Shown here: positions 3,201-44,345 of the stretch, in pieces
Numbering within the stretch: position 1 is the stretch's first letter
Layout: every line of letters begins with the position of its first letter
Assembly (NCBI RefSeq): GCF_002113885.1
Contig: NW_018405338.1
Span: 353,317 to 417,316, forward strand
Source of the DNA: Mizuhopecten yessoensis
Taxonomy: Eukaryota
Length of the DNA stretch: 64,000 bases
Direction of reading: 5' to 3'
Made by a program: the position numbers and the translations under genes
The notes under the pieces: model-generated
What the model saw: the letters and a program-made list of their open reading frames with translations, nothing else
Databases searched by the model: none
Told to the model about the DNA's origin: nothing

Positions 3201-4299
3201 CAAATTTACATAAAAATGAATAACTAAATCGTAAGGATTTACTTGATTTTGTATTTTTAAATAACATCGACGCTCATTTCTGCTCCTTTCACCTTATAAC
3301 GTGATAGTGTCTTCTTTGTCAAAGGTTAAGTTTAAACAAAAATGAAATTGGCCTGTATACCATTTACAATATCATGCTGTTAAATTGTTAAATTATATTT
3401 CAGAATTAATAATGAGCATTTCATAAACATTTCAATATCATCATCATGCTTTACATGACATTATTGTATGCATATAGGTTGTCCTCGATTTCAAACAAGG
3501 TTTAATTTATGTTATTTCTGTTTTAATTGTGACATCATATGAGCATACATTTCGATGTTGCATATATATCCCATTCAGATTTTTGTATTCGTTGTCAAAA
3601 GCAGCATTGCTTATATGTTATGAAACAAAAAACAGCTTAAAGAAGCGACTGTCCTGGTTCTAAACTAAACCACATTTTTCTGAATAACAAACACAAGATA
3701 AAGTAAGGGGCATTTAAATAAACCAGTTTATATAAAAACTGCATGTTCCCAACGTAGGCGCAAAATTGTATTCCAGACGTACCTTGTGTGGTCTTTTCTG
3801 TGATATGTGGTGTCGTGTGATCCGTTGTTGTCTCAGATGAAAAGTCTGTTGTAGATAACACATCTGTTGTGTGATCTGATGTATATTCTGATGATTGCTC
3901 TATATAATCTGTTGTTGTCTCTGCATGATATGTTGTTGTTGTTGTATTATCAGTTGTTGGGTTTGTAAAATATGTTGGACTTGTATTTCTAAATCCTGTA
4001 GTATATTTGTATGTTGAAGATGTTGGATCTGAAGTGGGTGTTGGCGCTATGGATATGGATGTAGTTGTGGGTGGAGTGGGTATAGGTGAATAAGGTGGGA
4101 GCGAAGTGGGTATAGGCGAATAAGGTGGGAGCGAAGAAGGTATAGGTGAAGAGTGTGGAAGTGAAGTAGGTTTAGGTGAAGAGGTTAGAAGTGAAGTGGA
4201 TATAAGTGAAAAGGGTGTGAGTGTTGATGTACTTGCAGTTGCGACAACTGATATATTTGAATGCATGATAATAAATGCCACCAACAGCATCTGACGCAT
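288..4299 (-). CDS. Adhesion GPCR paralog A, 5' part (signal peptide, short Ser/Thr/Pro mucin exon, two Ig-like domains); gene runs off the left edge; one acceptor may be damaged
   Basis: Exons 4299-3783 (MRQMLLVAFII..., donor ACACAAG|GTACGT; acceptor TTAG at 4338-4337, 37 nt before the ATG), ~3200-2965 (MTCEF...CGNIEWRI...DAG), 984-778 (KVYCGLG...IVCKISNW...W) and 431-288 (SSDGGYYLCKLC), all phase 1. They match paralog B exons 41548-38608, 37655-37425, 36550-36344 and 35872-35726 one for one. The receptor call rests on this paralogy; the 7TM exons lie outside the window. Confidence 0.8.
1240..2744. mobile_element. MITE family 1 copy whose right TIR is split by a nested insertion (pieces 1240-1525 and 2693-2744)
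   Basis: The right TIR stops at tgacatattccaggc (1525) and resumes at ttccaggcgtacagagaacgaaagtgagcgtaa...atcgaagatg (2693-2744). Confidence 0.75.
1526..2692 (+). mobile_element. Non-autonomous Mutator-like (MULE) DNA transposon with a transposase remnant
   Basis: ~27-bp TIRs (GGTGTGTTCTCCTTTCCCCAACTTTTT / AAAAAAGTGGGAGAAAGGAGAACAAACC) and TSD TTCCAGGC at 1518-1525 and 2693-2700. Positions ~2104-2265 read LFCDGTFYMCPTQFQQIYTVHARIGDQMYPLVYSLLPSKSQATYQRFFTLLK, matching the MULE transposase DGTF..P..F.Q.Y..H...PLVY.LL..K...TY motif. Confidence 0.85.
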
Positions 4300-4375
4300 G
4301 ACTGCTGGTAAGTTCCGGTGATCAGATAACGATGACCTAATGCCAATATAATATTATTTAATACATTATATCAAA

Positions 4376-4665
4376 CCTTTACTTTCTAAACAAACAATGT
4401 ACGTTTTAAACGAGTCACAACGTTTCCAGACCGAGTGAGCGATTTGTATTTTTTTCTATTTTTGTTTATGTGTATTAAAAAATATGTAATTTCGTCACAT
4501 CATCGTACAGGTAAAAATACAAATCGATCCCTCAGTCATAGCTTGACAAAGGGATCAGTCGGTCTTGACACGTTGTGACACGTTTAGTACGTACACTGTT
4601 TGTGTAGAAAATCAAACTATAATATGACATATTTCCAAAATGACGAATCTTGTTGAAGATATCAC
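4376..4665. repeat. Interspersed repeat with internal inverted arms; related partial copies at ~17360-17475 and ~37680-37985
   Basis: The segments cttgacaaagggatcagtcggtcttga.acgttg.gacacg.tta.tacgtaca.tgtttgtgtagaaa and atcttcaa.aagattc.tca recur at the three loci, in both orientations. Confidence 0.6.
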
Positions 4666-5724
4666 AATGTCAGTATGTTATTTCTGTCCTTTAATTTCAT
4701 GGAAATTAACCGTTTTTTGCTGAATGGTCAAAATAACACTTTTGTTGTGAATTTTGTTGAGCTCTACCAATACAACTGGGATTACCATTGCTTTGCTTGA
4801 TGTGTATCCGTTTCTCTATTCGTCTCTCTATTCGTCTCTCTATCCGTCTGTTAGTATAATTAGTGTCTGGATCGTTTACATTTGATTAAACGAAGAGTTT
4901 TTTTGCTCAAACTTTTGAATCTATACTAGACGCTAAACCATGTGTTCACTTTCATCATCAAAATATAAAATGTTGACTAAAAGTTCGATTATCATGTGTC
5001 AATCGTTTAAAGATCAGTGTCACGTGCCATGTTCATACGTCACAGGTCAAGGTGACGGGGAGGGGTCATATGGCAAGTAATTAATGTGCTTATTATGTCA
5101 ATAATTTCATAAATGCCTATTTTATCACATTTCACTGATACATGCATTGACACTACAAGAGGCCCAATGGACTATTTCTGATCAATAATGTGTAAAACTT
5201 GAAAAAAAAAAGTTAGCAACGCCTCTTGGTTATCGAGAAGCTGGTTAAGACAAGTTATTTGAGCCGTCTTGTTAGCCCTTCATCCCAGCATGTAACTGAC
5301 CAATATAATCATCATTGTTTTTTATTTATTTTATCCTTGTAACCTTGAAAGTAGATCAAGTTAATTATACCATAGTTTATTGGGCTTCAATAAAGGAGCG
5401 TATTAGCCAAATATTATGACCCTAGACATATTTGTGTTTCAGAAGAAGTGCTAAAAGATTCAGACAAGGTAAGCTAAAACCTTAATACATGTCATTACCA
5501 GGTCATCGTCCTGAAGGTCAAAAAAGAAGTACAAATGTCAAAGATACTTTAAAAAATAATTATCAGCGAGTTATTCTTTAAAAAACACACACTATGCTTA
5601 TTTTCTCATTTCGCAAACATTATATGTATCTTGTAACTTTGATTTATTATTTAAACCTGTTTTAACTACACTCGTTGCCAAAGAAAAAGCTACATATCCA
5701 GTAAGTTCAATTAGAGAGAGGAAG

Positions 5725-6670
5725 GCACAGCTATCAAACCATTTGGTTAAACATGATAATTATAATGACTACAAATAAGTAACTATATATATGATATTTT
5801 GTTACAACACATACCGTTTCAATTGAAATCTTCTTTTCAAAGCTGCTTCTTAACTGGCGCTAGTTTTAAGGTGAGCTCCCGGCTAGTTCAACGAGGACGT
5901 TCTTTTTACCTTATCGGTGTCAAAGGTGAATCCATTCTCTTTAAATCGGAGCAAAATCAATAATAAAACAATTTGTTGTTCAGACGTTGAGGGAAGCAAT
6001 GTGAATATTAGATTAGAAATAACCTCACAAGATAACCTTATCGTCGTGGAATTCAAAATACTTGTATCGGTAGAGTACAAATCCAATATTGATTTGATGT
6101 TCAAAAATGCATCCTTTTACCTGTGAAGATTAACCATTTTTGTTACTGTAGATTGTATCATTATTATGTAATGTAGATATTTTTCACTTAAAAATGTGTA
6201 TAAATACGTATTTTTTAATGAAACATGAAGAAATCAATACATTTCGTAAACAGACATATATTTTATCTCTGTATTACTCACCACATTGCAAGGTTGGCAA
6301 GGAACAAGTGTACTTGGACTTGGAGCATTGTCGGCATATGTCAAGATATTTAAACAATTTTAATCAATTTTATTTGAAATCGTCACAGTCCGTTATCAGA
6401 GAAATGTATTTCAATATTGCAAAGATAGTCTAAGCGGCCAATTAACACAACAAGGCAATTATGTGCACGTTGTGCTTTTAATAGTCCATCAAAACAGTAA
6501 GGTAACCAGTACTCCTCTGAATAAGTTCAGAAGTTAAAGGGTTTTTAACGCCCGTCCTCTTCTGTTTCAACAATAGTTTTGACCAAATTGCATTTCTAGC
6601 ATTTTGGTCCCTAGCATCACCAATTAGTCCTAAAAGGACAAAACATGCAGTGTAATTCATGTGTATATTC
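5725..6670 (-). promoter_or_regulatory. Upstream/leader block of aGPCR-A with putative non-coding exons (donor at 5814-5813; acceptor at 6122-6121; donor at 6281-6280)
   Basis: Near-identical to 11678-12740 and more distantly homologous to 42460-43220. Splice signals are AAACG|GTATGT, CACAG|G and AATGTG|GTGAGT. The 6120-5815 segment has stops in all three frames, so it is non-coding. Confidence 0.6.
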
Positions 6671-7112
6671 ATAAGTGTCTGAAACAAACCAATGTCAACA
6701 CCCTCGAGAATTTCTTTTCAAGATTAACAAACTTCACTTTGAATATTGAACTATGTATCATAAATATGTATTGATATATAAATCACAAAATAACTTCCGA
6801 CTATAGTATAACTACTAACCTATCTGTACCAGTTTCATCCCGCTTTTCCTCCCGGTTTAAATTGCAACCTGTACGATTTTAACCTGTCCTTTTACTTCTA
6901 ATTGGCTGATCGTAACTCGTTGGAAGGTCTTATGCTTCAAAGACCTAGTTCTGAACTAATTAAAACATGTTCAACTACCCTTGAGTTGGAATTTGGATGT
7001 TTTACCCGGGCGTATAAAAAAATGTTTATCTAAAGTGTATTATATATAAGCGCTTAAAAGAACCTTCAACGATTAAATATCTCAGTACTACTGGTGTTTA
7101 CAATGTTTATAA

Positions 7113-7375
7113 TTATTACAATTACTATACGTGTATGTAAACTGACAATTACTACACGTGTATGTAAACTGACAATTACTACACTTGTATGTAAACTGAC
7201 AATTACTACATATGTATGTTAACTGACAATTACTACATGTGTATGTAAACTGACAATTACTATACGTGTATATAAACTGATAATTACTATATGTGTATGT
7301 AAACTGACAATTACTACACGTGTATGTAAACTGACAATTACTATACATGTATGTAAACTTACAATTAATTTACGT
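7113..7375. repeat. 27-bp minisatellite (gtgtatgtaaactgacaattactacac), left block
   Basis: About 9-10 tandem 27-bp units visible directly. Confidence 0.95.
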
Positions 7376-7761
7376 GTAAGCATAGACATTTTCTATCATT
7401 TTATAAAATAGTTGGCGTTCTTTACTCGACACAAAGCGTTAATGAAATATAATTATAAAAAACGGGTCATGTGATAATGCATAAGGTAGCAGTATACAGT
7501 AGAAATGGCCCGACTCTGATAAACAAGACACATGTCGAGGGAACGTAAACACAGCGGATTTACCGTACACAACACATGTATACATGTATATATATTTGTA
7601 GACTGCATTACATTTACAATACATATAAAGTACTGAGAAGTGTATAAACCTCTTTTTTCTATGTATGTCACTTGTGTGAAAACCATGGTTACCACATCAT
7701 AATACCAAAAAATGCCAAAAATTGCTATTTTTAACCCAAAATTTGACCCCCGCAACTAGTA

Positions 7762-8463
7762 NNNNNNNNNNNNNNNNNNNNNNNNNNNNNNNNNNNNNNN
7801 NNNNNNNNNNNNNNNNNNNNNNNNNNNNNNNNNNNNNNNNNNNNNNNNNNNNNNNNNNNNNNNNNNNNNNNNNNNNNNNNNNNNNNNNNNNNNNNNNNNN
7901 NNNNNNNNNNNNNNNNNNNNNNNNNNNNNNNNNNNNNNNNNNNNNNNNNNNNNNNNNNNNNNNNNNNNNNNNNNNNNNNNNNNNNNNNNNNNNNNNNNNN
8001 NNNNNNNNNNNNNNNNNNNNNNNNNNNNNNNNNNNNNNNNNNNNNNNNNNNNNNNNNNNNNNNNNNNNNNNNNNNNNNNNNNNNNNNNNNNNNNNNNNNN
8101 NNNNNNNNNNNNNNNNNNNNNNNNNNNNNNNNNNNNNNNNNNNNNNNNNNNNNNNNNNNNNNNNNNNNNNNNNNNNNNNNNNNNNNNNNNNNNNNNNNNN
8201 NNNNNNNNNNNNNNNNNNNNNNNNNNNNNNNNNNNNNNNNNNNNNNNNNNNNNNNNNNNNNNNNNNNNNNNNNNNNNNNNNNNNNNNNNNNNNNNNNNNN
8301 NNNNNNNNNNNNNNNNNNNNNNNNNNNNNNNNNNNNNNNNNNNNNNNNNNNNNNNNNNNNNNNNNNNNNNNNNNNNNNNNNNNNNNNNNNNNNNNNNNNN
8401 NNNNNNNNNNNNNNNNNNNNNNNNNNNNNNNNNNNNNNNNNNNNNNNNNNNNNNNNNNNNNNN
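7762..8463. other. Assembly gap (N run)
   Basis: Run of Ns. Confidence 1.
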
Positions 8464-9110
8464 GTGTATGTAAACTGACAATTACTATATGTGTATGTAA
8501 ACTGACAATTGCTACACGTGTATGTAAACTGACAATTACTAAACGTGTCTGTAAACTGACAATTACTATTCGTGTATGTAAACTGACAATTACCATACGT
8601 GTATGTAAACTGACAATTATTATACGTGTATGTAAACTAACAATTAGTATAGTGTATGTAAACTGACAATTACTATATGTGTATGTAAACTGACAATTTC
8701 TATTCGTGTATGTAAACTGACAGTTACTACACGTGTATATGAACTGACAATTACTATACGTGTATGTAAACTAACAATTAGTATAGTGTACGTAAACGGA
8801 CAATTACTATATGTGTATGTAAACTGACAATTACTATATGCGTATGTAAACTGACAATTGCTACACGTGTATGTAAACTGACAATTACTAAACGTGTTTG
8901 TCAACTGACAATTACTATTCGTGTATGTAAACTGACAATTACTACACGTGTATATGAACTGACAATTACTATACGTGTATGTAAACTAACAATTAGTATA
9001 GTGTATGTAAACGGACAATTAATATATGTGTATGTAAACTGACAATTACTATACGTGTATGTAAACTGACAATTACTACACGTGTATTTAAACTAACAAT
9101 TAGTATAATG
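8464..9110. repeat. 27-bp minisatellite, right block, ~110 bp downstream of the FKRP-like stop codon
   Basis: More than 20 tandem units of the same 27-mer, some with small deletions. Confidence 0.95.
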
Positions 9111-9223
9111 TACGCATGGACATTTTCTATCATTTTATAAAATATATGGCGTTCTTTACTCGATACAAAGCGTAAATGAAATAAATGTATAAAAAACGGG
9201 TCATGTGATAATGCATAAGCTTG

Positions 9224-10972
9224 TTACACCAACGTGTATTTGAACTGAATATTTCCCTCTTCATAGTAACTATCTATGCAATCCTGATTGTCAACCACTA
9301 AACAGCTTGTAAAGCGATTGTGGACGTTTGTCCCTCCGCCACCTTCGCTTGGATGTTGTTTGTGCCGGAATAAACCAGGATACACATTACGTGTAGCTAA
9401 AGCCGGGTTTTTGTTTACATAAACTAAACGTCCATTATGTGGAATCCTGGTCAGATCACGACTTTGAGATCTTAGAATGTAGGAACCGGTAATGGACGAA
9501 GTAGCCCATATATCAATATGCCAATGTTTGCTACTTGCACTTAAAATCGACGGTTGTTCAGATGCTGAACAGTTCCGAGGTTTTCGATCCGTCCCAAATT
9601 TAATGCCTTTGGACCGTAGTGTGATTCCGGCTTTCTCTAAGGTCCTGAAGTCTTCACACCAAAATTTGATGTCTCCGTCAATCTCCCATGGTATCACCTT
9701 ATACAATTTCACAGCTCCCAGGTGTGTCCCGGCATTCAATTGGCACGGCACACCTGCTTTCTCACACATCTCCATGACGCCGTTGTTTAAATCTGCCAGT
9801 TCCTGAACGCAACATGGTGATCTGACATACCCTTTCCCCTTCTTACATTGGTACGGGTAGTTACATCCAAAATGTATAGTCAGACCCATTGAGAATTTCA
9901 ATTTGTAAAGATATCGTTTTCTTCCAAATTTCTCCCAGTCCGTGGTTATCTCGCTACGGCGAGGGGAGTCCATATAAAACATTGCATCAGGACAAACAGC
10001 AACTTCACCCTCAAGTCTCATAAAAAAGTCTTCATATAATCCCATAGGCGTCAAATTGCCATCAAATTGTACCTGCTTCAATTTGTCGGTTCTGATCAAA
10101 AACGGTCCGTCCACGTGATCACAAAATACACAGTCGTGCATGGACTCGTCGTAGCCCTCCTCATATGCTACCGTGTAGTTTCGGAGCACCCTCTGATGAC
10201 AACCTAAACTCCAAACAGAGTCAGAGTTTCTGATGGACCCTCCTACTGCGGTAACTTGCAGCCTCTCAATTTCCCGTACGAGTCGCTCGATGCGGGAATC
10301 AGAATCAAGTGCCGTCATATTTTTAACAACTAAAGTGTATTTGGTTTTCACTCTAGCTATTAACTTGTTTAAAGCTTCCCCCTCTTTGATACTAGACGCC
10401 AAGTGTATGACATGTGTACGGTTCTGCTCCTTGATATTACCACCATAGTCCCCGACTACAGCCAAGATATACCCGCCGTAACCATTTGAGAAGAACTTTG
10501 TACTATCAGCATGTGAACCATAATCGAGGCGAACAATTGTGACGATTTCCTCAATACGTTTAGAGTAGGAGCAATTTTGGACCCGATATCCATATATATT
10601 GTCAACGTAATACTCCGGACACACGCTGTCGGACTTATACTCCTTCCGTTTTGTGACGTTTTCAAAGGAGGTTCCGAATCTTTTCAGTACTCTATCCATA
10701 TGTTCGCATGCATATCTCAGTGCTTTGCTTGTTTTGGAGCATCTTGCGTGTAACCTTGCTTGTTTTAGATACAGGGCTACATCAATTATTTGCCGTTTAA
10801 TATCTGACACATCCAAGTGATCTATTGGAGTATCCAATGACGCCGATTTTGTGTAGTTTTTAGAGAAAGCATGATGATTGGTTGAGCGTTGAATGTCTGT
10901 CCATATACATGTATATATAACGAGTATTCCGACCATTCCGATTCCGAGATATAGTGCAAAATATTTCTTCAT
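9224..10972 (-). CDS. Fukutin-related protein (FKRP)-like / LicD-family phosphotransferase, type II membrane protein, single coding exon, 582 aa
   Basis: ATG at 10972 lies 9 nt after a TTTTACAG|G acceptor (AG at 10983-10982). N-terminal TM helix YFALYLGIGMVGILVIYTCIW; GT-A-like stem; FKRP-type Zn-finger cysteines FGC...C...PCC; LicD/FKRP motif AGTHLGAVKLYKVIPWEIDGD (FKRP: [21 protein letters not shown]); downstream HIDIW (FKRP: HVDLW). Confidence 0.85.
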   Translation of the reverse strand: MKKYFALYLGIGMVGILVIYTCIWTDIQRSTNHHAFSKNYTKSASLDTPIDHLDVSDIKRQIIDVALYLKQARLHARCSKTSKALRYACEHMDRVLKRFGTSFENVTKRKEYKSDSVCPEYYVDNIYGYRVQNCSYSKRIEEIVTIVRLDYGSHADSTKFFSNGYGGYILAVVGDYGGNIKEQNRTHVIHLASSIKEGEALNKLIARVKTKYTLVVKNMTALDSDSRIERLVREIERLQVTAVGGSIRNSDSVWSLGCHQRVLRNYTVAYEEGYDESMHDCVFCDHVDGPFLIRTDKLKQVQFDGNLTPMGLYEDFFMRLEGEVAVCPDAMFYMDSPRRSEITTDWEKFGRKRYLYKLKFSMGLTIHFGCNYPYQCKKGKGYVRSPCCVQELADLNNGVMEMCEKAGVPCQLNAGTHLGAVKLYKVIPWEIDGDIKFWCEDFRTLEKAGITLRSKGIKFGTDRKPRNCSASEQPSILSASSKHWHIDIWATSSITGSYILRSQSRDLTRIPHNGRLVYVNKNPALATRNVYPGLFRHKQHPSEGGGGTNVHNRFTSCLVVDNQDCIDSYYEEGNIQFKYTLV

Positions 10973-11677
10973 TGTTATCACCTGTAAAACGAAATATAAA
11001 ATTAATAGATAATATCATCACATAATGTAGCAGAGATCACATTGTCTGTATTTCACCACTGTAGTCGTTTGTCGTTTAGATCAACTATTGATTCAATTGG
11101 TTTCACAGAAAGCATCTGTGTCAAAATGTGAATGCTCTGAGTAAAACTAACTACATAGTTTAGTGAAAATTATATATTTTAGCTAGTTAGTGCATCTAGT
11201 GAGTGGGAACTGTTCATTATAGACATTCTTTGAAGTAATTAACAGGTAGAAACGTATTTAGAGAAGAGAAGCATGTTTTCACATATTGGGTTGATATGAT
11301 TTGTTCTATAATGTGCTACCCAATTCGTAAAAAGTGAAAAGAATCATTGTATATTTTAGCTAATTAGTGTATCTTATTAGTGGAAATTATTCACATTAGA
11401 CCTCCTTTGAATAAGAAATAATGAACAGATAGTAACTTAGGAATTTAAAAAAAAAAATCATGTTTTCACATATTGGGTTGATAGGATTTGTCCTATCATG
11501 TGCAACCCAATTCGTGAAAAGTGAAAAAAATAATCTTTGTATTTGTTTTGCTTATTCGGCGATTTAATTAGTTTGGATGCTTCACATAAGAGTTAGCTTG
11601 AATAATAAGTAATCTAAACACAGTAATTAATGAATTCAATATAGATTTTTCTGTCTTCACATATCGGCACGCTGCAC

Positions 11678-12740
11678 AGCACAGCTATCAAACAATTTGG
11701 TTAAAGCTTGATAAATGTAATGACTACAACTAAAGTGATATATATGATATTTTGTTACAACACGTACCGTTTCAATGAAATCCTTCTGTTCTAAACTGCT
11801 TCCTCACTGGCGCTAGTTTTAAGGTGAGCTCCTGGCTAGTTCAACGAGGAAATGGTGTTTACCTTATCAGTGTCAAAGGTTAATCCATTCTCTTTAAATC
11901 AGAGCAAAATAAATAATAAAACAACNTAAACTGCTTCTTCACTGGCGCTAGTTTTAAGGTGAGCTCCTGGCTAGTTCAACGAGGAAATGGTTTTTACCTT
12001 ATCAGTGTCAAAGGTTAATCCATTCTCTTTAAATCAGAGCAAAATCAATAATAAAACAATTTGTTGTTCAGACGTTGGGGGAAGCAATGTAAATATTAGA
12101 TTAGAAATAACCTCACAAGATAACCTTATCGTCGTGGAATTCAAAATACTTGTATCGGTAGAGTACAAATCCAATATTGATTTGATGTTCAAAAACGCAT
12201 CCTTTTACCTGTGAAGATTAACCATTTTTGTTACTGTAGATTTTATCATTATTATGTGATGTAGATATTTTTCGCTTTAAAATGTGTATAAATACGCATT
12301 TTTAATGAAACATGAAGAAATCAATACATTTCGTAAACAGACATATATTTCATCTCTGTATTACTCACCACATTGCAAGGTTGGCAAGGAACAAGTGTAC
12401 TTGGACTTGAAGCATTGTCGGCATATGCCAAGATATTTAATCAATTTAAAAAAAAAAGATATCTTCAAAGCCCGTTATCAGAGAAATGTTTTTCTTTATT
12501 GCACAGGTAGTCTTAACAAACCATTAATGCTATAAAAGAATTTCGTGCACACGGCGCTTTTCATAGTCCATCAAAACAGTAAGGTAACCAGTACTCCTCT
12601 GAATAAGTTCAGAAGTTAAAGGGTTTTTAACGCCCCTCCTCTTCTGTTTCAACAATCGTTTTGACAAATTTGTATTTCCAGCTTTTTGGTCCCTAAAAGG
12701 ACAAAACATCTGTATGATGCAATGTAATTCATGTATATAT
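11678..12740 (-). promoter_or_regulatory. Duplicated receptor upstream/leader block in front of the FKRP-like gene (donor at 11767-11766; acceptor at 12210-12209; donor at 12368-12367)
   Basis: Aligns by eye at high identity with 5725-6670 and keeps the same splice signals (AAACG|GTACGT, CACAG|G, AATGTG|GTGAGT). Confidence 0.65.
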
Positions 12741-15186
12741 TACCAATTTGTAAAGGTACAATCACCTTAGAGTAATATGATATATTTGTAATTCCACCAT
12801 CACAGTAAGTCCAATCAGGGTCATACGGAAGTTAAAACGGCCAGTCATTGAGGGTCATACGGTGATCTTAATAGCCCGTCAATACACTAAGGTAATTTAG
12901 GGTACTTTGTAAGAGATCTGTTATGAACATTTAAGTGTATCATTATCGCGTATATGTATGTACTGTTAAATGAAATTCATGAAATTAAAGACAAAAACGT
13001 TTTATGGAGAAGACAGAAAACATCTTTTAAAGACACATAAACCCCTGTTCTCATAAGAATAGTTCATCTGGAATAATTTACAGTGTTAATATGAATTATA
13101 ATTTCGTTGAGCTTTTCAAACTTGATTCCGATACCATTTATATATACTTCCTTCTATTTAGGCCACTCAAATTTGCTAACTCTAAGATGATTTTCCACAA
13201 TGCCTCAACATCTAACATTGAGACAATACAGGCTCTAACGGCCATATATCTTTTCTATGCCCTTAAAAAACAGTGAGTGTAGCATGTGACACTAACTTAA
13301 TTTTTAGAGATCTGTTTAATTGCAACAAATTACAACACTGAAAGTCCTTTCAATATTTTATTACTCTAACAAAATAAAAATTAAACAGATGTAAAAAGAT
13401 AATTTACCCTTTGAACTTTGCATTTTTACAAATACGAAGAAGCTTATCTTTGACTGATATATTCTGACTATATAAATCAACATAACCATTTATAAAAATA
13501 TTTCACTCTCCGTATAAAATTCAAAACAATGAAGTCATGATAATATTAATCTGATTCACAATTTGTCAGAAAACTACATACATAATTTTCTTTCGTCAAA
13601 AATACGTATATTTACTATTATGCTTAATTCGGGAATTTATCTTGCAACAAAACCTCAAGATTAGCAAAAGTAACAGGGCGATAAATACAATAATGAGGTG
13701 ATCCTTTTTCCACCGTTGTACAAAAAATGTAATTAATCAAACAAATAACTAGTAATATAAAACATAACATGTATCACACAGCCACGTCGAACAGTCACCA
13801 TTTTCTCAGCACAATCATGACGTTATAATGGATTGGCAGTAAATCGACGAAACTTTTAAAGGTCATTAATATAAAGAAAATTTGATTCTTTTAAAATGTT
13901 GGAGAAAAGCGAGGTGGCATTGAAATAAATGACATTATATTACAAACTTATTGGAGCATTGTATTGAAATTTGATAGAGATAAGTTGATACTTGTAATTG
14001 TAATGGAATGTACCATGTTCGTTTTCCTCATTATCATTATCCCAAGGATTGATTCAATATATTTGAATACATGATTATCTTTCCACACCTCGCCGTTTGT
14101 CAACCAGTAAAGGCAACAATAAAAGATAATAAAGCCACAATGATCGCATGTATTATGGTGACGTCACTCCTGAAATAGACTGCGGTATCCTGTGGTTACA
14201 CGAACAGTAACTATAAAGTATAGTCTCATACGAAACCGGTACACGCAGAGATTGTTGATCGACATATACCATCTGTCTCCTTCCAGATTGGCCTCTGCAT
14301 GAATATATTCATTGACCCAATTTACTCAGTTAAATCAGTTAAATGTAACAGATGTTTCTTGACAATATTGTATAATGCAAAAAACTTTAATTCATAAATG
14401 AGTCTATAAGACACCAACCTTATTAGAGACACTATTTATCACATTTATAATTATGACAGTCCAAGACAAAAGAAGCATAAGAATGATGTGATGCGTCCCC
14501 GTCGTCAATGATTTTTGTATGGTGTAACTATCAGTTCCTTTTTCAGCTTTTTAGTGCGAAGCAAGCTACACACTACACAGATTAGTACGTTGCTCGTCAT
14601 CTTAACATGTACGTGCAAGATCTGTAATTGTATCGACCTTCAACATTCTGAAAACATAAAACATACCACTGTACATTCTGAAAACATAGATATCATATAT
14701 TACACAATGTGGTCGGCTGTTCACTATTTGAAATTTATAATTCGTCATGGTTACTTTTTTTAGGCAAAGAATGATTTTACTGTTCACAAATACAACAGTC
14801 AATGAATATTCGAACGGAAATTATAAGAATGATGGAAACATATTAAATAAGTCTAGGCCTATTTGATAAGCAGCTGTAATGCTAATATATTGTCGAACAA
14901 CTAATATCGTTATTGTGTGTCCAGGCTATTTTATGCCGTTGAATGATATATACTTCGAGGCAAGGTAAAACTTGAAAATTTTTCTTTTAAATAAAGCTTA
15001 GCGCGTGATTAGTTAACTGCCAAATGATTTAGAATTGTTCAAAACGTTATGAGATTGAAACGTATTATTGTACTATTTATATGGATTTTAGCCTTTATAA
15101 CGACAAATCTGACAATAATGCGAAACAAAATCGGTGGAAGCATGTTAGTACTGACGTAACCATTTGATCATAATAATTTTACATAC

Positions 15187-16572: not shown

Positions 16573-16615
<43 letters not shown>

Positions 16616-34600: not shown

Positions 34601-37600
34601 ATTGCGTGAATAAATAAGCTTCACCAAATGAAATTATACAAACACAAGCAATATTCATAATTTATCAAGGTTCCAAATGAGCATAGGGTCCAACATTTTA
34701 AAATTTAAATAAAAAAACACTTTGTTGTAAGACCTGTCATCGATTATATTTTTTTACATTATAATCACACATATGGTCCTTGTATATGATGCAATTAGGT
34801 CTTAAATATTCAAAGGCAACCTGCCGGTCTGTGTTCAAATGGTCTAATTCAAAAATGCAATAAGCATGAAGTTATTAATCCTTTCTGCATCAGAGATATC
34901 AAATCATCATATTTACATGATACATCTCATGCCATTATGGCCTCAGGATATTAAATCACCAGCGTCAGTGGTATAACGTCATTATTTCATCAGTGATATT
35001 ACGTCATTATTTATCAGTGTTATTACGTCATTATTTCATCAGTGATATTAAGTCAGTATAGCCATAGTGATATTACGTCAGTAATATTTCGTCAATAAAT
35101 ATTATGAATGACCATTATTGAATTAGTGATATTACGTCATTATTGCATAAGTAATATTACGTTATTATTGCATGAGTGATTTTACGTCCTTACTGTATTA
35201 GTGATATTACGTCATTACTACATCAGTGATATAACGTCATTACAGCCTCGGTGATATAACGTCATTGCATCAGTGATATTACGTCATTACTACATCGGTG
35301 ATATTACGTCATTACAGCCCTGGTGATATTACGTCATTAATCACATTACGACAATAGTTTTACATCATTTATATTGCATCAACATTATTACATCAATTTT
35401 ATCCATATATTGCATTAGTGTTATTACGTCATTATTGCATCGCTGATATTACGTAATTTTTATATTTATGACATTTAGTCATTATTTCAATAGTTACATT
35501 ACAAAATATCAAAACATTGCATTAGTGATATTCATATACAAAATAAATATATTTCATCAATTAATTAATTAAGGTCAAAATTATCATCCATAAACAATGT
35601 TTCTTGCTTTGGAATTATTTTATAAGAAAGAACGTAAAGCAGAACATATCGTTGATTTATTGCATTTAATTCATTAAATCATATGGCAATTAAACGTTAC
35701 GTCCATGACAAATAAATCTACGTACCTGCTTTACTATAGACATGTATGCTGCTGGTTTGATTCAAACACTTATATGGACTTGTTCGGCACAATCGACATT
35801 GGTAATCCCCATTGTCGGAGGTTTTAACGCTCGAAATGGACAATAGTGACCCTGACACTGTGTGTGATGTCTCTGAAAAACAACACACAATCACAAATCA
35901 ATCTCGATATCATCACCAGGTGTATTGGTCCGAAAGGAAACTAACGTCGCCTATTAAATTAATTCTATTCATATTTGTTTTAACGTGATATGTTCATCCA
36001 AATTTAAAACTCAAATACTTTTCTACCTCATCATTTTATTTTTCACTTATTTTTATATATATATATTATTGAGCTTATTATGTCATTATACCGGTGCACC
36101 TATTAATGATTACAATGCTTTTGTATTCGACGATTGCAAGATCCTCTACTGATCCGTCAGAGATATTTGGGGACGCTAAGCATTTAATGTACTACATTCT
36201 TTCAAAGTATCCTCAAAATCAAAAGAGTTTAAATTCTGTCGGTATGTTTTAATTTTTTTATTTCCCATACTCAACGTTACAAAGAGTAAGATTATAGATC
36301 TTACTGGACTATCACAAGATGAGTAAAGATGAAATAACATTACCTGTCATTTTTTTAGAGTTTTCAAGGTACCAGTTGAATTTCCATTCAGTCATGTTGA
36401 TTTCGGCCGCGTTGCTAATGTTACAAACCATGCTGACCTTTTGACCTTCCTCTAATGCGTGAGAAAGAGGAGAAATGGTCAAAATCGGTAAAGGCCGAAC
36501 CGTCACACTAAACGTTATGTTTAGATCACCAAGACCGCAAATAATGTTTCCTGTAAGCAAAATAACTCTTTATTACCACATTTTGTTTGAAACACAGTTA
36601 TTTGGAGATAACGTGTCACCAATGGTTATACACAATAATGAATTAAGAAAGCAATATACATTACATTAAAAGGTTGTTTTTTCTTCATGAGATGTTTCCC
36701 TCTATCTTTACTAACTACATTATCAACAGGAACAGCTTACTACTAAGCTGTACGAAGGGCGGGTCGATTTAAATTTTTCCTATCGTGACCTTTCCCGTTC
36801 TTTATAGTAACATCCCTACTTCCCCCACCAACTGTGTCTACATGTCACAATTAATTCGGTATTCAAGAGTTTGCTCTAAATATCATGATCTGTTATAGAT
36901 ATTGACTGCTGAAAGACAAACTTATAACAGAGGGTTTCAAGAGATGCAGGCTGATGATGAACATTGTTTGTTTTTTTTTTTATCAATTTCCAGTTATCTC
37001 ATTAGGAAATATTTTATTTTCATTTATGACATGAATGTCAATGTTTTTTATTATGCTCATTAGTACTGTGCTTTGTTGTTACGTTGTCAGCACTCCAGTT
37101 CTAGCTTTGAAGACGAGATTTAAATTTGCAAGGCAAGTGTCATCGATTAATAAAAGACGCTTACCTTTCTGGAAACCGGGTCTTATTCTCCTTCTACTTT
37201 TTCAATATTTTAATGCAATTATTTCCTTTGATCATAGTTTTGCCTTTGTTTTATCGTTCAGTTGACGGTTTTGTTGACTCTATACAATTTTTATTGTTTT
37301 TATCACACGTTAATATCAATGAAAATAATTATTTTTGAATTACTCTTAATATCATTTAGTAATTGTAATTGAGTCACTGTTGCAGATTACTTATAAATGT
37401 TTCTTGTTGACTCAAGCGTTTTACCTTCGTCTCTTAGGTACAAAGGATGAATATCCATCCTCGACTGTTTCCCGATACCATCGTCATTGTGTGTGATCGT
37501 GATCTTTGAGCTGTTTATATTACTGACATAGTTTCCTATTCTCCATTTAATATCGCCGCAGCTTCCTTGTGTGTTAAACTTACAGGTCAATGTCAGAGTA

Positions 37601-40600
37601 CTCCCTTCCTCTTGTGACACATTTTGTCGCAATTCTGTCGTATTAGCTGTGCAACCTGAAAATCGAAATAAATCAAATTGATCTTCAATAAGATTCATCA
37701 GTACTGAAATATGTGAAAAAGTATGTAGCTTTTACTTTCTACATAAACAATGTCCGTTTCTAAACTGTACAACCTGAAACATGAAATAAATGAAATGAGT
37801 CGTCAGTAAGATTCATTAGTATGGAAATATGTAATATTAAAGTTTTACTTTGTACACAAACAATGTACGTATTAACAGTGTCTCAACGTTTCAAGTCCGT
37901 CTGATCCCTTTGTCAAGATATGACTTAGTGAGCGATTTATATTGTTTACCTGTACAGCAATGTGACGAAATTGCATATTTCATAAGTCACTTGACCTGGG
38001 ACGTTTTGCCTAGCGATAGAGAGTGTAAACACACTGAATCGAATAGGTTACGAGTCGAGTGACATATGAAATATACCGTTTACTTTGGACATACTTTTTG
38101 AATAAAGTGTTCAATGTTATATGGTAATAAAAATTTGACTGAAAACAGGTATGGACCTGTTCACCTGCACACTGCTTCGAACGATAAATGTGTTTCTTAT
38201 TTATCTCCAGGGCCAAGTTCATTTACAGGTTCATATCGTACACAGTGTCCAATATAGTATACGCTATAGTTTGCTTTTCGTGACAACAAGATATTTGAAA
38301 GGCATGTATCTTTTAAATCGATATGTATGAATCTTTTCCGCTCTGCACGATCTGGTTGTAGAGAGCAACACTCCTGTCAAACAGATTTAATAAAAACCGA
38401 CTCTGTGTAAGTCGAGTCTTCACAGATAAATAATTTCTATCGATCTAAATGATATTTTTGCAGAAACAATCGTGTTTATTGTTCATCAACCATCTTACAA
38501 ATAACAGAAACTAAATCAGTACAGATACAGATAGATCATATAAATGCTACTGTCTACTTCCTCCATCATGTTCCCGTTCTAAGAAGAGAATTTAATTCTG
38601 CACGTACCTTGTGTGGTGCTTTCCAGGGCTTGTGTTGTAAAATCCGTCGATGTCTCAGATAAGGAGGTCGTTCGGAAGTTAGTTGTTGTGGGTGTTGTTG
38701 GTGGTGTTGTTGTTGTGGGTTTTGTTGTTGTGGTTGTTGTTGTTGTGGGAGTTGTTGAAGTGGGTGTTTTTGGAGTGGGTGTTGTAATATTGGATGTTTT
38801 TGTTGCTGCGGGTGGTGTTGTTTTGGGTGTTGTTGGGGGTGTTGTTGTTGTGGGTGTTGTTGAAGTGGGTGTTGTTGATGTGGGTGTTGTTGTTGTGGGT
38901 GTTGTTGAAGTGTGTGTTTTTGGAGTGGGTGTTGTAATATTGGATGTTTTTGTTGTTGCGGGTGGTGTTGTTGAGGGTGTTGTTGTTGTGGGTGTTGGTG
39001 GTGGTGGTGTTGTAGTGGGTGTTGTTGTTGTGGGTGTTGTTGTTGGGGGTGTTGTTGTTGTGGGTGTTGTTGAAGTGGGTGTTGTTGATGTGGGTGTTGT
39101 TGTTGTGGGTGTTGTTGAAGTGGGTGTTGTAATATTGGATGTTTCTGTTGTTGCGGGTGGTGTTGTTGAGGGTGTTGTTGTTGTGGGTGTTGTTGAAGTG
39201 GGTGTTTTTGGAGTGGGTGTTGTAATATTGGATGTTTTTGTTGTACTGGGTGTTGTTGTTGTGGGTGTTGTTGAAGTGGATGTTGTTGGAGTGGGTGTTG
39301 TTGGAGTGGGTGTTGTAGTGGGTGTTGTTGTTGTGGGTGTTGTTGTTGTGGGTGTTTTTGGTGGTGGTGTTTTAGTGGGTGTTGTTGTTGTAGGTGTTGT
39401 TGTTGTGGGTGTTGTTGAAGTGGATGTTGTTGTGGTGGGTGTTGTTGTTGTGGGTTTTGTTGTTGTGGGTATTGTTGAAGTGGGTGTTATTGTAGTGGGT
39501 GTTGTTGTTGTGGGTGTTGTTGTTGGGGGTGTTGTTGTAGTTGGTGTTGTTGTTGTGGGTGTTGTTGTAGTGCGTGTTGTTGAAGTGGGTGTTATTGTAG
39601 TGGGTGTTGTTGTAGTGGGTGCTGTTGTAGTGGGTGTTGTTTTAGTGGGTGTTGTTATTGTGGGTGTTTTTGTTTTTGTTGTTGTGTGTGTTGTTGTTGT
39701 GGGTTTTGTTGAAGTGGGTGTTGTTGTTGAGGGTGTTGTTGTTGTGGGTGTTGTTGAAGTGGGTGTTTTTGGAGTGGGTGTTGTAATATTGGATGTTTTT
39801 GTTGTTGCGGGTGGTGTTGTTGTGGGTGTTGTTGAAGTGGATGATGTTGGAGTGGGTGTTGTTGGAGTGGGTGTTGTTGTTGTGGGTGTTGTTGTAGTGG
39901 GTGTTGTTGTTGTGGGTGTTGTTGTTGGTGTTGTTTTAGTGGGTGTTGTTGTTGTGGGTGTTGTTGGAGTGGGTCTTGTAGTGGGTGTTGTCGGAGTGGG
40001 TGTTGTTGTAGGGGGTGTTGTTGTGGGTGTTGTTGGAGTGGGTGTTGTTGTTGTGGGTGTTGTTGTTGTGGGTGTTTTTGGTGGTGGTGTTTTAGTGGGT
40101 GTTGTTGTTGTAGGTGTTGTTGAAGTGGATGTTGTTGTAGTGGGTGTTGTTGTTGTGGGTTTTGTTGTTGTGGGTATTGTTGAAGTGGGTGTTATTGTAG
40201 TGGGTGTTGTTGTTATGGTTGTTGTTTTAGTAGGTGTTGTTGTAATTGGTGTTGTTGTTGTGGGTGTTGTTGTAGTGCGTGTTGTTGAAGTGGGTGTTAT
40301 TGTAGTGGGTGTTGTTGTAGTGGGTGCTGTTGTAGTGGGTGTTGTTTTAGTGGGTGTTGTTATTGTGGGTGTTTTTGTTTTTGTTGCTGAGGATGTTGTT
40401 GTTGTGGGTGTTATTGTAGTGGGTGTTGTTGTTGTGGGTGTTGTTGAAGTGGGTGTTGTTGTAGTGGGTGTTGTTGAAGTTGGTGTTGTTTCAGTGGGTG
40501 TTGTTGTGGTGGGTGTTGTTTTTGTGGGTGTTGTTGGAGTGGGTGTTGTTGGAGTTGGTTTTGTTGTTGTGGATGTTGTTGTTGTGGGTGTTATTGTAGT

Positions 40601-41548
40601 GGGTAATGTTGTGGGTGTTGTTGAAGTGGGTGTTGTTGTAGTTGGTGTTGTTGTTGTAGGTGTCGTTGAAGTGGGTTTTGTTGTTGTGGGTGTTGTTGAA
40701 GTTGGTGTTGTTCGAGTGGGTGTTGTTATTGTTGGTGTTGTTGTGTTGGGTGTTGTTGGAGTGGGTGTTGTTGTAGGTGTCGTTGAAGTGGGTTTTGTTG
40801 TTGTGGGTGTTGTTGTTGTGGGTGTTGTTGAAGCGGATGTTGTTGTGGGTGTTGTTGTTGTAGGTGATGTTGTTGTGGGTGTTGTTGTTTTGGGTGTTGT
40901 TGAAGTGGATGTTGTTGTGGTGGGTTTTGTTGTTGTGGGTGTTGTTATAGTAGGTGTTGGTGTTGAGGGTATTGTTGTTGGGGGTGTATTTGTAGTGGGG
41001 GTTGTTGTTGTTGGTATTGATGTGGGTGTTGGTGTAGTGGATGTTGTTGTAGTGGGTGTTGTTGTTCTGGGTATTGTTGTGGTTGGTGTTGTTGTTGCCG
41101 GTGTTGTGGTAGTGGGTGTTGGTGTCGTAGTGGGTGTTGTTGTAGTGGGGGTTGTTGTTGTTGGTGTTGATGTGGGTGTTGGTGTAGTGGGTGTTGTTGT
41201 TCTGGGTATTGCTGTGGTTGGTGTTGTTGTTGCCGGTGTTGTGGTAGTGGGTGTTGGTGTCGTAGTTGGTGTTGTTGAGGGAGATGTTTTAATGGGTGTT
41301 GTTGTTGAGGGTATTGTTGTAATGGGAGATGTTGTGGTAGGTGTTGTTGTCGTTGTTAAATTTGTTGGTGTTGTTGAAGTTAGTGTCGTTGTTGGTGTAG
41401 TGGTAAGTGGTGCTGTGATGGGTGTTGTTGTTGTTGTGTTTGTTTTTGTTGTCCTGGATAGAATAAGTGGTGTTGTTGAAGCTGTAGTAGTGAAAACGGT
41501 TTTATTTAACTCTATGAAGAAAAAGGTCACCAATAGCAAATGACGCAT
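15187..41548 (-). CDS. Adhesion G protein-coupled receptor paralog B: signal peptide, ~950-aa Thr/Pro mucin stalk, 2 Ig, HRM, GAIN/GPS, 7TM (7tm_2), cytoplasmic tail; about 1840 aa or more
   Basis: Phase-consistent exons: 41548-38608 (mucin); 37655-37425, 36550-36344, 35872-35726 (Ig x2); 33026-32922, 32499-32405 (HRM: C...IIWEETP...CP..GIATRRC...GNW....C); 30993-30781, 30061-29981, 29225-29102, 27810-27715, 26540-26477, 26130-26010 (GAIN); 25368-25322 (CVFW); 24735-24633 (WLSQGC...CQCTHL|TNFAVLISP); 22849-22755 (TM1); 22191-22089 (TM2, NLC); 21450-21300 (TM3, LHYFFL..F.LMLAEG); 20865-20796 (TM4); 19041-18975 (CWL...FVGP); 18467-18382; 17338-17212 (TM6, LLPVLGVTWIFG; GC donor); 16660-16619 (GFFIFLFYC); 16130-16053, 15865-15826, 15275-15187 (tail). 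The stop-containing exon is unresolved; candidates are 14294-14270 plus 14169-14153. Confidence 0.92.
16854..16944. mobile_element. ~90-bp palindromic MITE flanked by TTAA (possibly piggyBac-like); further copies at ~52503-52592 and ~58532-58620
   Basis: TIR taactcattcacccctga / tcaggggtgaatgagttaa around a conserved ttccaacctttgaa core in three copies. Confidence 0.7.
18047..18146 (-). mobile_element. 5'-truncated SINE with a V-domain-like core; the same tail occurs at ~62434-62500
   Basis: Reverse complement reads tttctccgggaactccggctttcctccac...ggcacgtccttaaatgaccatagctgttaataggacgtaaaac. Confidence 0.55.
19562..19750 (+). mobile_element. Degenerate tRNA-derived SINE (V-domain-like family)
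   Basis: B box ggttcgattcc and core ggttttctctggaatctccggtttcttcccac; homologous to 44149-44345. Confidence 0.65.
20010..20650 (+). mobile_element. Degenerate Penelope-like element, RT C-terminal fragment plus 3' region
   Basis: Reads IYPEFKVKDNTDSSISAVFLDL...NFPFLDINIPVSPTYDVYMS*LIRY*RA*SEYHDF...LLTDKITTQGF, the PLE RT thumb pattern (FLD...NFPFL.SNIP.SPAYGVY.SQLIRY.RAC), with several stops. Confidence 0.75.
23278..24282. mobile_element. ~1-kb non-autonomous DNA transposon, Kolobok-like (TTAA TSD, GG...CC ends)
   Basis: TTAA|GGATGTACTCTTCTGAG ... CTCAGAGGTGTACATCC|TTAA. Confidence 0.7.
26968..27322 (+). mobile_element. tRNA-derived SINE family 1 with (TTA)n tail
   Basis: A box TAGTCTAGTGG, B box GGTTCGAGTC, core tgtgtt.tatctttgagcaagatactttactc and a TTA tail; copies at 47006 and 54484. 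Confidence 0.85.
28140..28405 (-). mobile_element. Partial TRIM with a tRNA-like LTR (one LTR, PPT, internal region, PBS)
   Basis: On the minus strand: PBS TGGCGCCCA (~28398-28390), PPT GGAGGAGGGG, then a TGTGAC... LTR containing TGGCTCATTTGGTAGAGCG...GGTCGTGGGTTTG. Homologous to the 49593 element. Confidence 0.6.
28696..29030. mobile_element. MITE family 1 copy
   Basis: TIR ggggttacgctcactttcgctctctgcac... / ...gtgcagagagcgaaagtgagcgtaac. Confidence 0.8.
29578..29822. repeat. 21-bp minisatellite (ttaacatgagcacaaatgatt)
   Basis: About 11 tandem units. Confidence 0.9.
30322..30640. mobile_element. Probable Tc1/mariner-type MITE
   Basis: Imperfect TIRs ctgtatacggctttaatttcgcggggtcaatatttcg / gcgaaattaaacccctgcgaaatataaccgttata. 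Confidence 0.5.
34965..35530. repeat. Degenerate ~21-25-bp minisatellite built on cagtgatattacgtcatta
   Basis: About 16 recognisable units, roughly ten with an intact TTACGTCA. Confidence 0.85.
38680..41400 (-). repeat. Coding VNTR of the mucin exon (15-bp TTTPT-type unit with higher-order duplications)
   Basis: gtgggtgttgttgtt units; the blocks ATTKTSNITTPTPKTPTSTTP and TKTPTITTPTKTTPTTTAP...TSTTRTT recur. Confidence 0.95.
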
Positions 41549-42139
41549 GGTTGCTGTTGTCTTCTGTTGGCGTGCTGAAGATGACCTAAACGAGAGGTTA
41601 CAATATCAATTATTTAAACTAACCCTTTCTTATATAATAGGATGTTTTTGCTGAACTGTAAAGAAGCATGGTAAATGTCCATACCGTCATAATTGGTCAC
41701 CCGCTTAAATAAATAAGAGGGTCAACTTGGTGTCTGTCTGTCCCTCTGCCCGTCCGGTCGTCCCTCTGTTAGATTTTTTTCTCTCTTCATTAAAGCTCAT
41801 TGTATAACGTGTGGATCATACAGAGAGGCTTCACTTGTATCACATTCATCATCCTTGTCCAAACATATACGTCCAGTGGTCAATAACACCCCAAGGTTCT
41901 ACTGTTTTCCCAAAGGTCACACAAAGTGTGTTCCTAATTATTACAATTCCAGGGCAATAAATCATTTTTATGAAACTTTAAAAAATGCATTAAATACTTA
42001 CTGCTAATTATGCCCATTGGCATTGATCAGCTTAAAAGTGTTGTTAGGAATACAAACTAACAAAACGCCTATTCAAAAATGTATGAAATTGATGCGAAAA
42101 GTTTAAACAAATGTCCGTTTTCTTAGAATACATCCGTGG

Positions 42140-42303
42140 NNNNNNNNNNNNNNNNNNNNNNNNNNNNNNNNNNNNNNNNNNNNNNNNNNNNNNNNNNNNN
42201 NNNNNNNNNNNNNNNNNNNNNNNNNNNNNNNNNNNNNNNNNNNNNNNNNNNNNNNNNNNNNNNNNNNNNNNNNNNNNNNNNNNNNNNNNNNNNNNNNNNN
42301 NNN
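42140..42303. other. Assembly gap (N run)
   Basis: Run of Ns. Confidence 1.
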
Positions 42304-42459
42304 CTTTTTGCTATGTTCCTAATTGTATGTGAGAATACGGCTGGTAAAACGAAATCATTGAAAGGGGTGAGAGTGGGCCGTCACACCGATTTAATGAGGT
42401 TAGAAAGCGAGGCAATTTTAAAAATAGTATGATTAAAATAGTCGTAAATATGTTTTTCG

Positions 42460-43220
42460 GTCATAACACCTACCTTTTTAAATGAAATCCTGCTTCTTTT
42501 CCAAATTGCTTCCAACAGGCGCTAATGAATTCCCATTTAGTTTAACAAGGACGTCATTTTACTTTACCAGTCCTCTTCTCTTTAAATCAGTGCAAAATCA
42601 ATAACACTAGCTGTCTGTTGTTCAGATATTGTGGGAAGCAATGTGAACTTAAGATTAGAAATAACCTTGATAACCTTATCGTCGCGGATTCCTAATACCC
42701 GCGGAGTACAAATATTTTATTGATTTTATGTTCAACAGTGTGTCCCGTTCTACCAGAAAAGATAAACAAAGTTGATAAAAACTAGGGGACCCTAAAGTAC
42801 GTAATGTATAGCTTGGAGGAGGTTTTTTTATAGTCATTGTATGTATTGTACGTTATTTTGTCGATAAATGCGGTGGGGGATCAATATATTTTATATCTGT
42901 CAAGCTTGATTTTGGCCACACGGATCAGAGAATATAGTTACACCTAAACGGGTGGGATGTTTTCAGGGTTATATTGGACATTTAGGGGTTTAGATCAACT
43001 TTCGGTAAAAATCCTATCTTGTAGAATACCATCATGGGAGGGGGCATTTACTTAAAAGGGTTATCTGAACCCTTGAACAAATCAGTTTAGGTCCAAGATC
43101 CAAACATAGATAAATTGTAACAAAGTATCATGTCCCTGTGATTTCGGAATTACATGACACATTTCAAAGTTGGCAAGGAGCAAGTGTACATCAAACAGAG
43201 GCATTGTCGGATTTTAGACA
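42460..43220 (-). promoter_or_regulatory. Upstream/leader block of aGPCR-B, a diverged homolog of the 5.7-6.7 kb and 11.7-12.7 kb blocks (donor at 42473-42472)
   Basis: Shared segments ttctctttaaatcag.gcaaaatcaataa, tgttgttcaga...gggaagcaatgtgaa...gattagaaataacct...gataaccttatcgtcg and gttggcaagga.caagtgtac; donor AAAAG|GTAGGT at the homologous position. Confidence 0.6.
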
Positions 43221-44148: not shown

Positions 44149-44345
44149 GGGTGGTCGGGTGGCGCAGTGGATAGCGCACTTGCCTTTCACCAAGGCTACC
44201 GGGGTTCGATTTCCCGATCGGACGTGAAAAGGTATTGGGTCACCTGCCTGACCACATTGGTTTTCTCCGTGTACTCCGGTTTCCCCCCACATTATGACCA
44301 CCGCGCGCTAACATCCGGGCCAACAAGAGTGATTTATATAAGTTG
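44149..44345 (+). mobile_element. tRNA-derived SINE family 2 (V-domain-like core)
   Basis: A box TGGCGCAGTGG, B box GGTTCGATTTCC, core ggttttctccgtgtactccggtttccccccac. Confidence 0.8.

Follow-up and report, generated by a model that had tools for sequence, protein, structure and literature searches.

In a 64,000-nucleotide stretch of the genome of the scallop Mizuhopecten yessoensis (G000:C2011:353317-417316, hereafter the window; the assembly searched is 988 Mb), an FKRP/LicD-like enzyme gene stands between two adhesion G protein-coupled receptor (GPCR) genes, A and B, and the enzyme and both receptors are each preceded by a related non-coding leader block (blocks F, A and B, respectively). 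We consider it probable that the enzyme gene came to this place by a multicopy Pack-TIR insertion (TIR, terminal inverted repeat) into intron 1 of GPCR A, accompanied by a duplication of the receptor promoter, and that its adjacency to the receptors is a by-product without a dedicated stalk-modifying role. The underlying event, namely gene capture by a long-TIR DNA transposon, well bounded and with promoter duplication at one insertion site, we regard as real. The parts of this arrangement are listed below from high to low coordinates; all lie on the minus strand except where no strand is assigned.

11679-12740, minus strand: block F, a receptor promoter/leader, probably in its original position, with a GT donor at 11767 and low unspliced RNA cover
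11039-11678, minus strand: left arm of a dispersed DNA transposon with long TIR (154 candidate sites), containing internal repeats of ~177 bp and lying 88 bp downstream of the donor
10982-11038, minus strand: captured piece of the parental intron, 57 bp, with polypyrimidine tract and AG acceptor; homology to C239 starts at 11038
9224-10981, minus strand: single coding exon of the FKRP/LicD-like enzyme, ATG at 10972, 582 aa, intact
8464-9223, minus strand: 3' untranslated region (UTR) of the cargo with its 27-bp minisatellite, also at C239, C5459, C5530, C4203 and C76744
7485-7761, no strand: one end of a young high-copy miniature inverted-repeat transposable element (MITE) at a gap edge, inside the second 3' UTR copy (1330 candidates, 96-97% identity)
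7118-7484, minus strand: second 3' UTR copy (7.5% diverged) with minisatellite, identified by sequence comparison
6671-7117, minus strand: element interior, present only in enzyme-carrying copies; it ends at 6671 and the right arm is missing
5725-6670, minus strand: block A, a 946-bp promoter/leader copy before receptor A, GT donor at 5814, with a single-copy Pecten homologue that has the same donor

Copies of the enzyme gene elsewhere in the assembly carry the argument. Intact copies are present at C5459 (98% DNA identity) and C239 (95%), and broken ones at C5530, C4203, C76744, C75058 and C58209; the cargo copies at C5459, C5530, C4203, C76744 and C75058 are 91-98% identical to the window at the DNA level, and the best protein match of the window enzyme is an M. 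yessoensis RefSeq protein identical to the C5459 copy. The arm is found upstream of the enzyme at C5459, C5530 and C76744, and in inverted orientation downstream of it at C5459, C5530 and C4203. The cargo thus lies between both ends of one TIR element in the sister copies C5459, C5530 and C4203, and has the left arm only in the window. None of the scaffold-placed sister copies contains the receptor block. The C239 locus is free of the transposon: its homology to the window runs from 11038 onward, no arm occurs in the 1.5 kb upstream, and the inner edge of the window arm at 11039 directly abuts the start of this homology. In a quick tree of the enzymes, C239 falls outside the pair of window and C5459 copies, and the scallop-wide relatives, at ~60% identity, group in a clade of their own. 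Judged by this anatomy, which is that of a multicopy Pack-TIR, the enzyme exon is transposon cargo. A retrocopy was ruled out, since the cargo includes the acceptor and 57 bp of intron, and the members of this family have a single coding exon anyway.

The element belongs to a dispersed family whose copies share a sharp terminus starting with TG. A 24-base terminal pattern has 128 occurrences in the genome against 0 for a control, and the termini often form inverted pairs (at least 19, spaced 78 bp to 25 kb apart). One empty element, 982 bp long, is complete, with a terminus at either end and a target duplication of 6 bp. The left flanks of the element copies in the window, at C5459 and at C5530 differ from one another. 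Termini of the form TG..CA with a 6-bp duplication, the latter from the one element, agree with IS3EU/GingerRoot or with Ginger (TG..CA, 4-6 bp); a Helitron was ruled out, as the termini are inverted repeats. The features by which Pack-TIRs are recognised are present, apart from target duplications of the loaded copies.

The boundaries at the insertion site are exact. The homology between blocks F and A stops at 11679 and the element terminus begins at 11678; at the other end, the element interior, which runs to 6671, joins block A at 6670. The layout in the direction of transcription is promoter (F), one-armed element, 946-bp promoter copy (A) and the rest of receptor A. Further features of the blocks are as follows.

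42445-43230, minus strand: block B, leader/promoter of adhesion GPCR B, 70% identical to block A over 356 bp, GT donor at 42473
12740-12570: old dispersed repeat in block F, its distal ~170 bp
12059-11791: 135-bp tandem duplication in block F, extra relative to block A
12791-12902, minus strand: sequence upstream of block F, single copy in the genome, without counterpart upstream of block A

The three blocks, with donors at 5814, 11767 and 42473 and acceptors at 4337, 10982 and 41586, read as the initial annotation gave them, and their assignment as the leader/promoter region of the receptors is borne out by its conservation, with the same donor, in Pecten and Argopecten. Blocks A and F align at 88-91%, with 5-14% substitutions depending on the segment, and a further piece of ~70-90 bp in block B (43141-43229) also matches block A, at 74%. 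The block had been described as devoid of TIR or repeat features. Its core is low-copy genome-wide, but the distal ~170 bp of blocks A and F is an old dispersed repeat with 590 candidates at ~75% identity; the description fails on this repeat and on the transposon terminus, which starts at 11678 just where F stops. A high-copy repeat as an account of the whole block was ruled out, the dispersed part being confined to these distal ~170 bp, and so was an LTR-like (long terminal repeat) origin, the block being a conserved single-copy leader in Pecten and absent from the sister elements.

As for the direction of the duplication, the DNA directly upstream of block A is element interior, whereas the sequence upstream of block F (12791-12902) is weakly colinear with the DNA upstream of block B (score 55 against a shuffle maximum of 50, z 6.5) and has a marginal match in Argopecten intergenic DNA. 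Because F has unique upstream DNA, weakly colinear with that of B, and A has element interior in this place, the original promoter is probably F, of which A would be the shortened copy. It had been proposed that a duplication gave the enzyme the promoter of the receptor. A duplicated block is indeed found, but mechanism and direction are different: the enzyme is cargo behind what is probably the original promoter, and the copy serves receptor A.

Two assembly gaps lie in the window, at 7762-8463 and 42140-42303, and the uninterrupted stretch between them (8464-42139) contains the enzyme open reading frame (ORF), block F and gene B. The right-hand gap falls within the inferred first intron of gene B and touches no reading frame. 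The two sides of the left-hand gap are not simply continuous, with the 27-bp minisatellite of the intact copy on one side and the MITE and second 3' UTR on the other, and further rearranged element sequence must lie within it. C75058 matches the gap edge over 34 bases of the high-copy MITE and has the MITE at the same 3' UTR site; we counted it as a separate copy.

The following course of events would account for this arrangement. A non-autonomous DNA transposon with long, internally repetitive TIRs would have captured the single coding exon of a scallop FKRP/LicD-like gene together with its acceptor and 3' end, the boundaries of which are observed, presumably by template switching. The loaded element would then have moved to several loci, where copies with different flanks are observed, and one copy came to lie in the first intron of adhesion GPCR A, 88 bp downstream of the donor of the leader. 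The element may then have broken internally, and the broken end may have been ligated to a copy of the locus that lacked the element, at a position 946 bp upstream of where the element had inserted; the arrangement is observed, and the event is what we infer from it. This joining would have removed the right arm and given receptor A a fresh, 5'-shortened promoter and leader. The enzyme exon would be left as a promoter-trap passenger behind the old receptor promoter, where splicing from the leader is possible in principle. A literature search on large target duplications returned nothing relevant.

RNA reads from four runs were inspected over 9150-15100 of the window. Cover is shallow, consisting of two contig sets (X1 and X2) and two raw runs of 2 and 15 reads, and rare forms are dropped by the contigs. 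X1 and X2 represent RNA, as the last exon of gene B is spliced at 14647 in them; the 3' UTR of gene B is covered at a depth of 25-47 in both, ending ~600 bp before block F. Leader-to-enzyme splicing, which the initial annotation predicted, is allowed by the position of the enzyme, but at this shallow cover the joint 11768->10981 is listed in none of the four runs, though B is well covered in two of them. Instead, unspliced low-depth contigs cross the donor and the block/arm junction (X1, 11490-11908; X2, 11575-11771). The listed RNA variants mostly match the C75058, C76744 or C239-like copies, and X1 carries the C75058 deletion 9637->10197. The contigs closest to the window copy are defective: X1 has an acceptor changed from AG to AA with read-through into the arm, and X2 has a 4-bp insertion. 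These defective contigs are likely to come from the window locus. One X2 contig ends exactly at the exon start, 10981. In X24 a few reads belong to the enzyme family, and the 3' UTR of gene B has none. It is because the available RNA is weak, unspliced or broken that a by-product is favoured.

In other scallops the receptors occur without the enzyme. The Pecten receptor (P0034) has one copy of the block, which shows 62% identity across 316 bp and keeps the same GT donor, placed 1.5 kb before the ATG, and in Argopecten (P0043) one block stands before each receptor. Neither enzyme nor arm was found in the 10 kb preceding the Pecten receptor, nor in the DNA between two Argopecten receptors. Synteny of enzyme and receptor, which had been put forward as a check, is therefore not conserved at the Pecten and Argopecten loci, and by this comparison the pairing is lineage-specific.

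The enzyme consists of an N-terminal anchor, a GT-A-like stem, a zinc loop and a nucleotidyltransferase (NTase) domain. Its predicted model (pLDDT 78) finds human FKRP (PDB 6kak) as the best fold match, with an E value of 5e-21 and 16-18% identity. The zinc cysteines are kept (370, 376, 387 and 388), D432, D434 and D487 correspond to FKRP Asp362, Asp364 and Asp416, and AGT stands at the hG[GS] position. FKRP Arg295, which is essential and binds the acceptor ribitol-phosphate (PMC6965139), is not kept, the corresponding residue being Q375, just before the second zinc cysteine. The Pfam FKRP_N score of 24.8 bits lies below the cut-off of 27, and the true FKRP gene is elsewhere, at C3547 (207.9 bits). 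The proposed likeness to FKRP thus stands for the fold, the zinc cysteines and the catalytic aspartates, and falls for Arg295, the Pfam cut-off and orthology. The enzyme belongs to a family expanded in bivalves, with at least 10 intact genes. Its predicted activity is most likely that of a CDP-alcohol (CDP, cytidine diphosphate) phosphotransferase for glycans with another donor or acceptor than FKRP; phosphorylcholine is the group transferred by LicD enzymes, and glycans bearing such groups occur in many invertebrates (PMC11982090).

Several points weigh against the insertion and by-product reading. At the window site there is neither a target-site duplication nor a right arm, and transposition is read from the clean left terminus; nor is there a target-site duplication at the loaded copy C5530, and the target duplication is known from one element only. 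No transposase was identified for the TIR family, the interiors of the 4-25 kb elements not having been read. The RNA evidence is shallow. The intact ORF and a ratio of non-synonymous to synonymous substitution (dN/dS) of 0.33-0.40 between copies suggest that some copies are under constraint. It reaches significance on the branches of C239 and C5459, but not on that of the window copy (3 synonymous and 3 non-synonymous changes, p 0.12). Finally, the divergence of blocks A and F is greater than that of the window and C5459 cargo (dS 0.036), and therefore either later gene conversion or an older block duplication is needed. The window cargo is a visible mosaic relative to its sister copies: beyond codon 171 it differs from C5459 at only two positions, and 114 bp of the 3' UTR are identical. 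Recent conversion of a mosaic cargo can, on the sequence comparison, explain the low divergence.

The block divergence also bears on the main rival, which shares the transposon origin and places the block duplication before the insertion: F would have belonged, as promoter, to an older tandem paralogue resembling A, the element would have inserted into intron 1 of that gene, and the receptor body would later have been deleted or scrambled. Besides the excess of block over cargo divergence, this replaced receptor would fit the C75058 piece of an immunoglobulin (Ig) exon, 91% identical to A, beside enzyme pieces and an A-type leader piece, and the Argopecten array with its extra mucin exon and block. 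However, both block ends lie exactly at element boundaries, which is simpler as one linked event, the readable part of 6.7-11.7 kb holds no receptor remnant, and in a mosaic cargo low divergence gives no insertion date; we therefore judge it improbable. Still less probable is that an accidental insertion has since become a functional new gene, spliced and under the control of the receptor promoter, with a receptor-like tissue pattern and a substrate unrelated to the receptor. The intact 582-aa ORF, the donor and acceptor intact in the reference, the kept catalytic residues, the family-wide dN/dS and the X2 contig ending exactly at 10981 would suit it; the window branch without significant constraint, the missing joint and the broken window-like alleles in X1 and X2 do not.

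The initial annotation had proposed a receptor plus glycan-modifier module, in which the enzyme would be co-expressed with the receptors and possibly modify their own Thr-rich stalks, in the form considered here by adding a phosphodiester-linked group to the O-glycans. The shared leader, the FKRP fold with its zinc cysteines and aspartates, and the action of vertebrate FKRP on a mucin-like domain (PMC6965139) favour such a module. Nevertheless we hold it to be very unlikely: the sister copies lie at unrelated loci unlinked to receptors, the pairing is absent from two other scallops, no leader-to-enzyme splice was seen in the four runs and the window-like alleles in RNA are broken, Arg295 is lost and true FKRP is encoded at C3547, and the enzyme-family reads of X24 come without reads on the B 3' UTR. 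Furthermore, we know of no substrate specificity that a Golgi-type enzyme gains by gene adjacency. There is, lastly, hardly any chance that blocks A and F are one locus assembled twice around the gap. A gap and repeats do lie between them, and small orphan contigs duplicate parts of the region; but because A and F are 5-14% apart, against 0.5% between block A and the other haplotype of A, they are two loci, their upstream flanks differ, and contigs from two independent runs, made on other animals, read across the block/arm junction, as does C42874. On this divergence and these contigs misassembly was ruled out.

Genes A and B are complete adhesion GPCRs with mucin, two Ig, HormR, GAIN/GPS and seven-transmembrane (7TM) parts. 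The receptor models were compared exon by exon, with no joined model, and the exons of A and B match the Argopecten protein P0043 one by one, which has Pfam HRM, GPS and 7tm_2. Both have the GAIN/GPS, the secretin-type 7TM and the long N-terminus that mark adhesion GPCRs.

13345-41585, minus strand: adhesion GPCR B, with mucin exon (ATG 41548), Ig, Ig, HormR, GAIN/GPS and 7TM exons, from exon matches
14647-13345, minus strand: last exon and 3' UTR of gene B, spliced 3' end and UTR seen in RNA runs X1 and X2
1-4336, minus strand: 5' part of adhesion GPCR A, with ATG 4299, mucin exon and Ig exons, from exon matches

Gene A extends ~18 kb past the window. A third, more diverged adhesion GPCR of the array lies on the same strand ~38-49 kb left of the window, and no leader block was detected for it in the DNA examined (L025/L024). 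Stalk length differs strongly between the paralogues: the mucin exon of B (38579-41548) has 989 codons with a 15-bp Thr/Pro repeat present 180 times, and that of A ~170 codons. The 7TM exons (in B, 22848-15190) are 80-97% identical between A and B and the Ig/GAIN exons ~50%, which suggests conversion of, or strong constraint on, the membrane part. Upstream of gene B there are MITE-like long palindromes or inverted repeats at 46037-46485, 57030-57198, 44150-45058 and 60814-61731. In Argopecten (L073:3719-7754), a lone mucin exon is followed by a further leader block before a full receptor; leader-plus-stalk duplications therefore recur in the array. In Pecten, the FKRP-like relatives (L070) are clustered in tandem, some of them broken, with a leader exon that precedes the coding exon by ~3 kb; the arm of the window element was not found at this cluster.

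Other copies of the enzyme and of the element deserve mention. The left terminus at C5459 is preceded, at a distance of ~140 bp, by a donor-like site (L030:125-136), and this intact copy may also be an intron-1 promoter trap. C75058 (2149 bp) is a scrambled mosaic of an A-type leader piece, inverted arm repeats, an internal deletion and a MITE, in which the receptor Ig-exon piece is joined out of frame to enzyme pieces via short microhomology; in RNA run X1 both the deletion and the MITE junction are covered more deeply than the intact copies. At C5565:1081879, an older FKRP-like paralogue (63% identical) has an arm of the TIR family 1.6 kb upstream, facing away from it, and C4037, a near twin of this paralogue, is without ~290 bp close to the start. 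The element copies at C5295 and C4261 have ~2 kb of a different interior in common and form a second loaded subfamily. Ten inverted pairs of TIR-family termini, 4-25 kb apart, contain no FKRP-like gene and are candidates for the autonomous partner or for carriers of other captured genes.

C1211:172344-186116, C4190:156517-168053, C4574:39504-49795, C4871:512938-521675, C5295:926234-951503: inverted pairs of TIR-family termini without FKRP-like gene
C76620:60489-78841, C76693:67864-74838, C76588:37659-48022, C2850:48651-54065, C5553:291427-295322: further inverted pairs of the same kind

Few multicopy Pack-TIRs with an intact protein-coding cargo are known from animals. In the scallop family a whole 582-aa enzyme is carried, with two intact mobilised copies, and the window gives a base-resolution view of the duplication of a host promoter by insertion; the ~ten further elements of 4-25 kb add to the interest of the case. 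It may serve as a case of new-gene birth by promoter capture and as a route for the FKRP/LicD-like expansion of bivalves; a literature search on bivalve fukutin-related expansion or gene capture in scallops found nothing. A wider and rather doubtful idea is that this giant foldback-like transposon family acts as a natural promoter trap: its full-length enzyme exon has an acceptor and lacks a promoter, and single insertions would turn into functional genes under host promoters, here via a GPCR promoter with the receptor rescued by duplication. If true, the enzyme would acquire a new tissue pattern and possibly alter surface glycans.

Among known systems, the closest is Ssk-FB4 of Drosophila (Tan et al. 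2021, PMC8277862), in which host sequence is likewise carried at several sites in a non-autonomous element with long TIRs (~700 bp), with intact coding cargo, chimerism with flanking host sequence and local tandem duplication at one site. That survey called it the first potentially functional coding multicopy Pack-TIR in animals; the main text of the survey does not mention molluscs (PMC8277862). The scallop family, known here from sequence, differs in its host, a mollusc, in its TG..CA termini, in the length of the duplication (6 bp, from one element, as against 9-10 bp), and in a one-armed window copy with a 946-bp host promoter duplication. The median cargo of Pack-TIRs is 224 bp (PMC8277862), whereas the scallop family carries a single-exon enzyme of 1.75 kb, which brings its own acceptor but no promoter. 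IS3EU/GingerRoot and Ginger (PMC10045372) share the TG..CA termini, the 6 bp fitting IS3EU/GingerRoot and the TGT start fitting Ginger, whereas the scallop arms are 500-640 bp long with tandem repeats and are foldback-like. With human FKRP (PMC6965139) the enzyme has in common, as far as sequence and model tell, the stem and NTase domain, the four zinc cysteines and the three aspartates, and it differs in the low identity, the sub-cut-off Pfam scores and Q375 in place of Arg295. Finally, the scallop receptor arrays (P0034, P0043) have the same exon order and the same non-coding leader block with its donor 1.5-2 kb before the ATG, but an enzyme borne by a transposon, with a second leader, stands between two receptors in M. 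yessoensis only.

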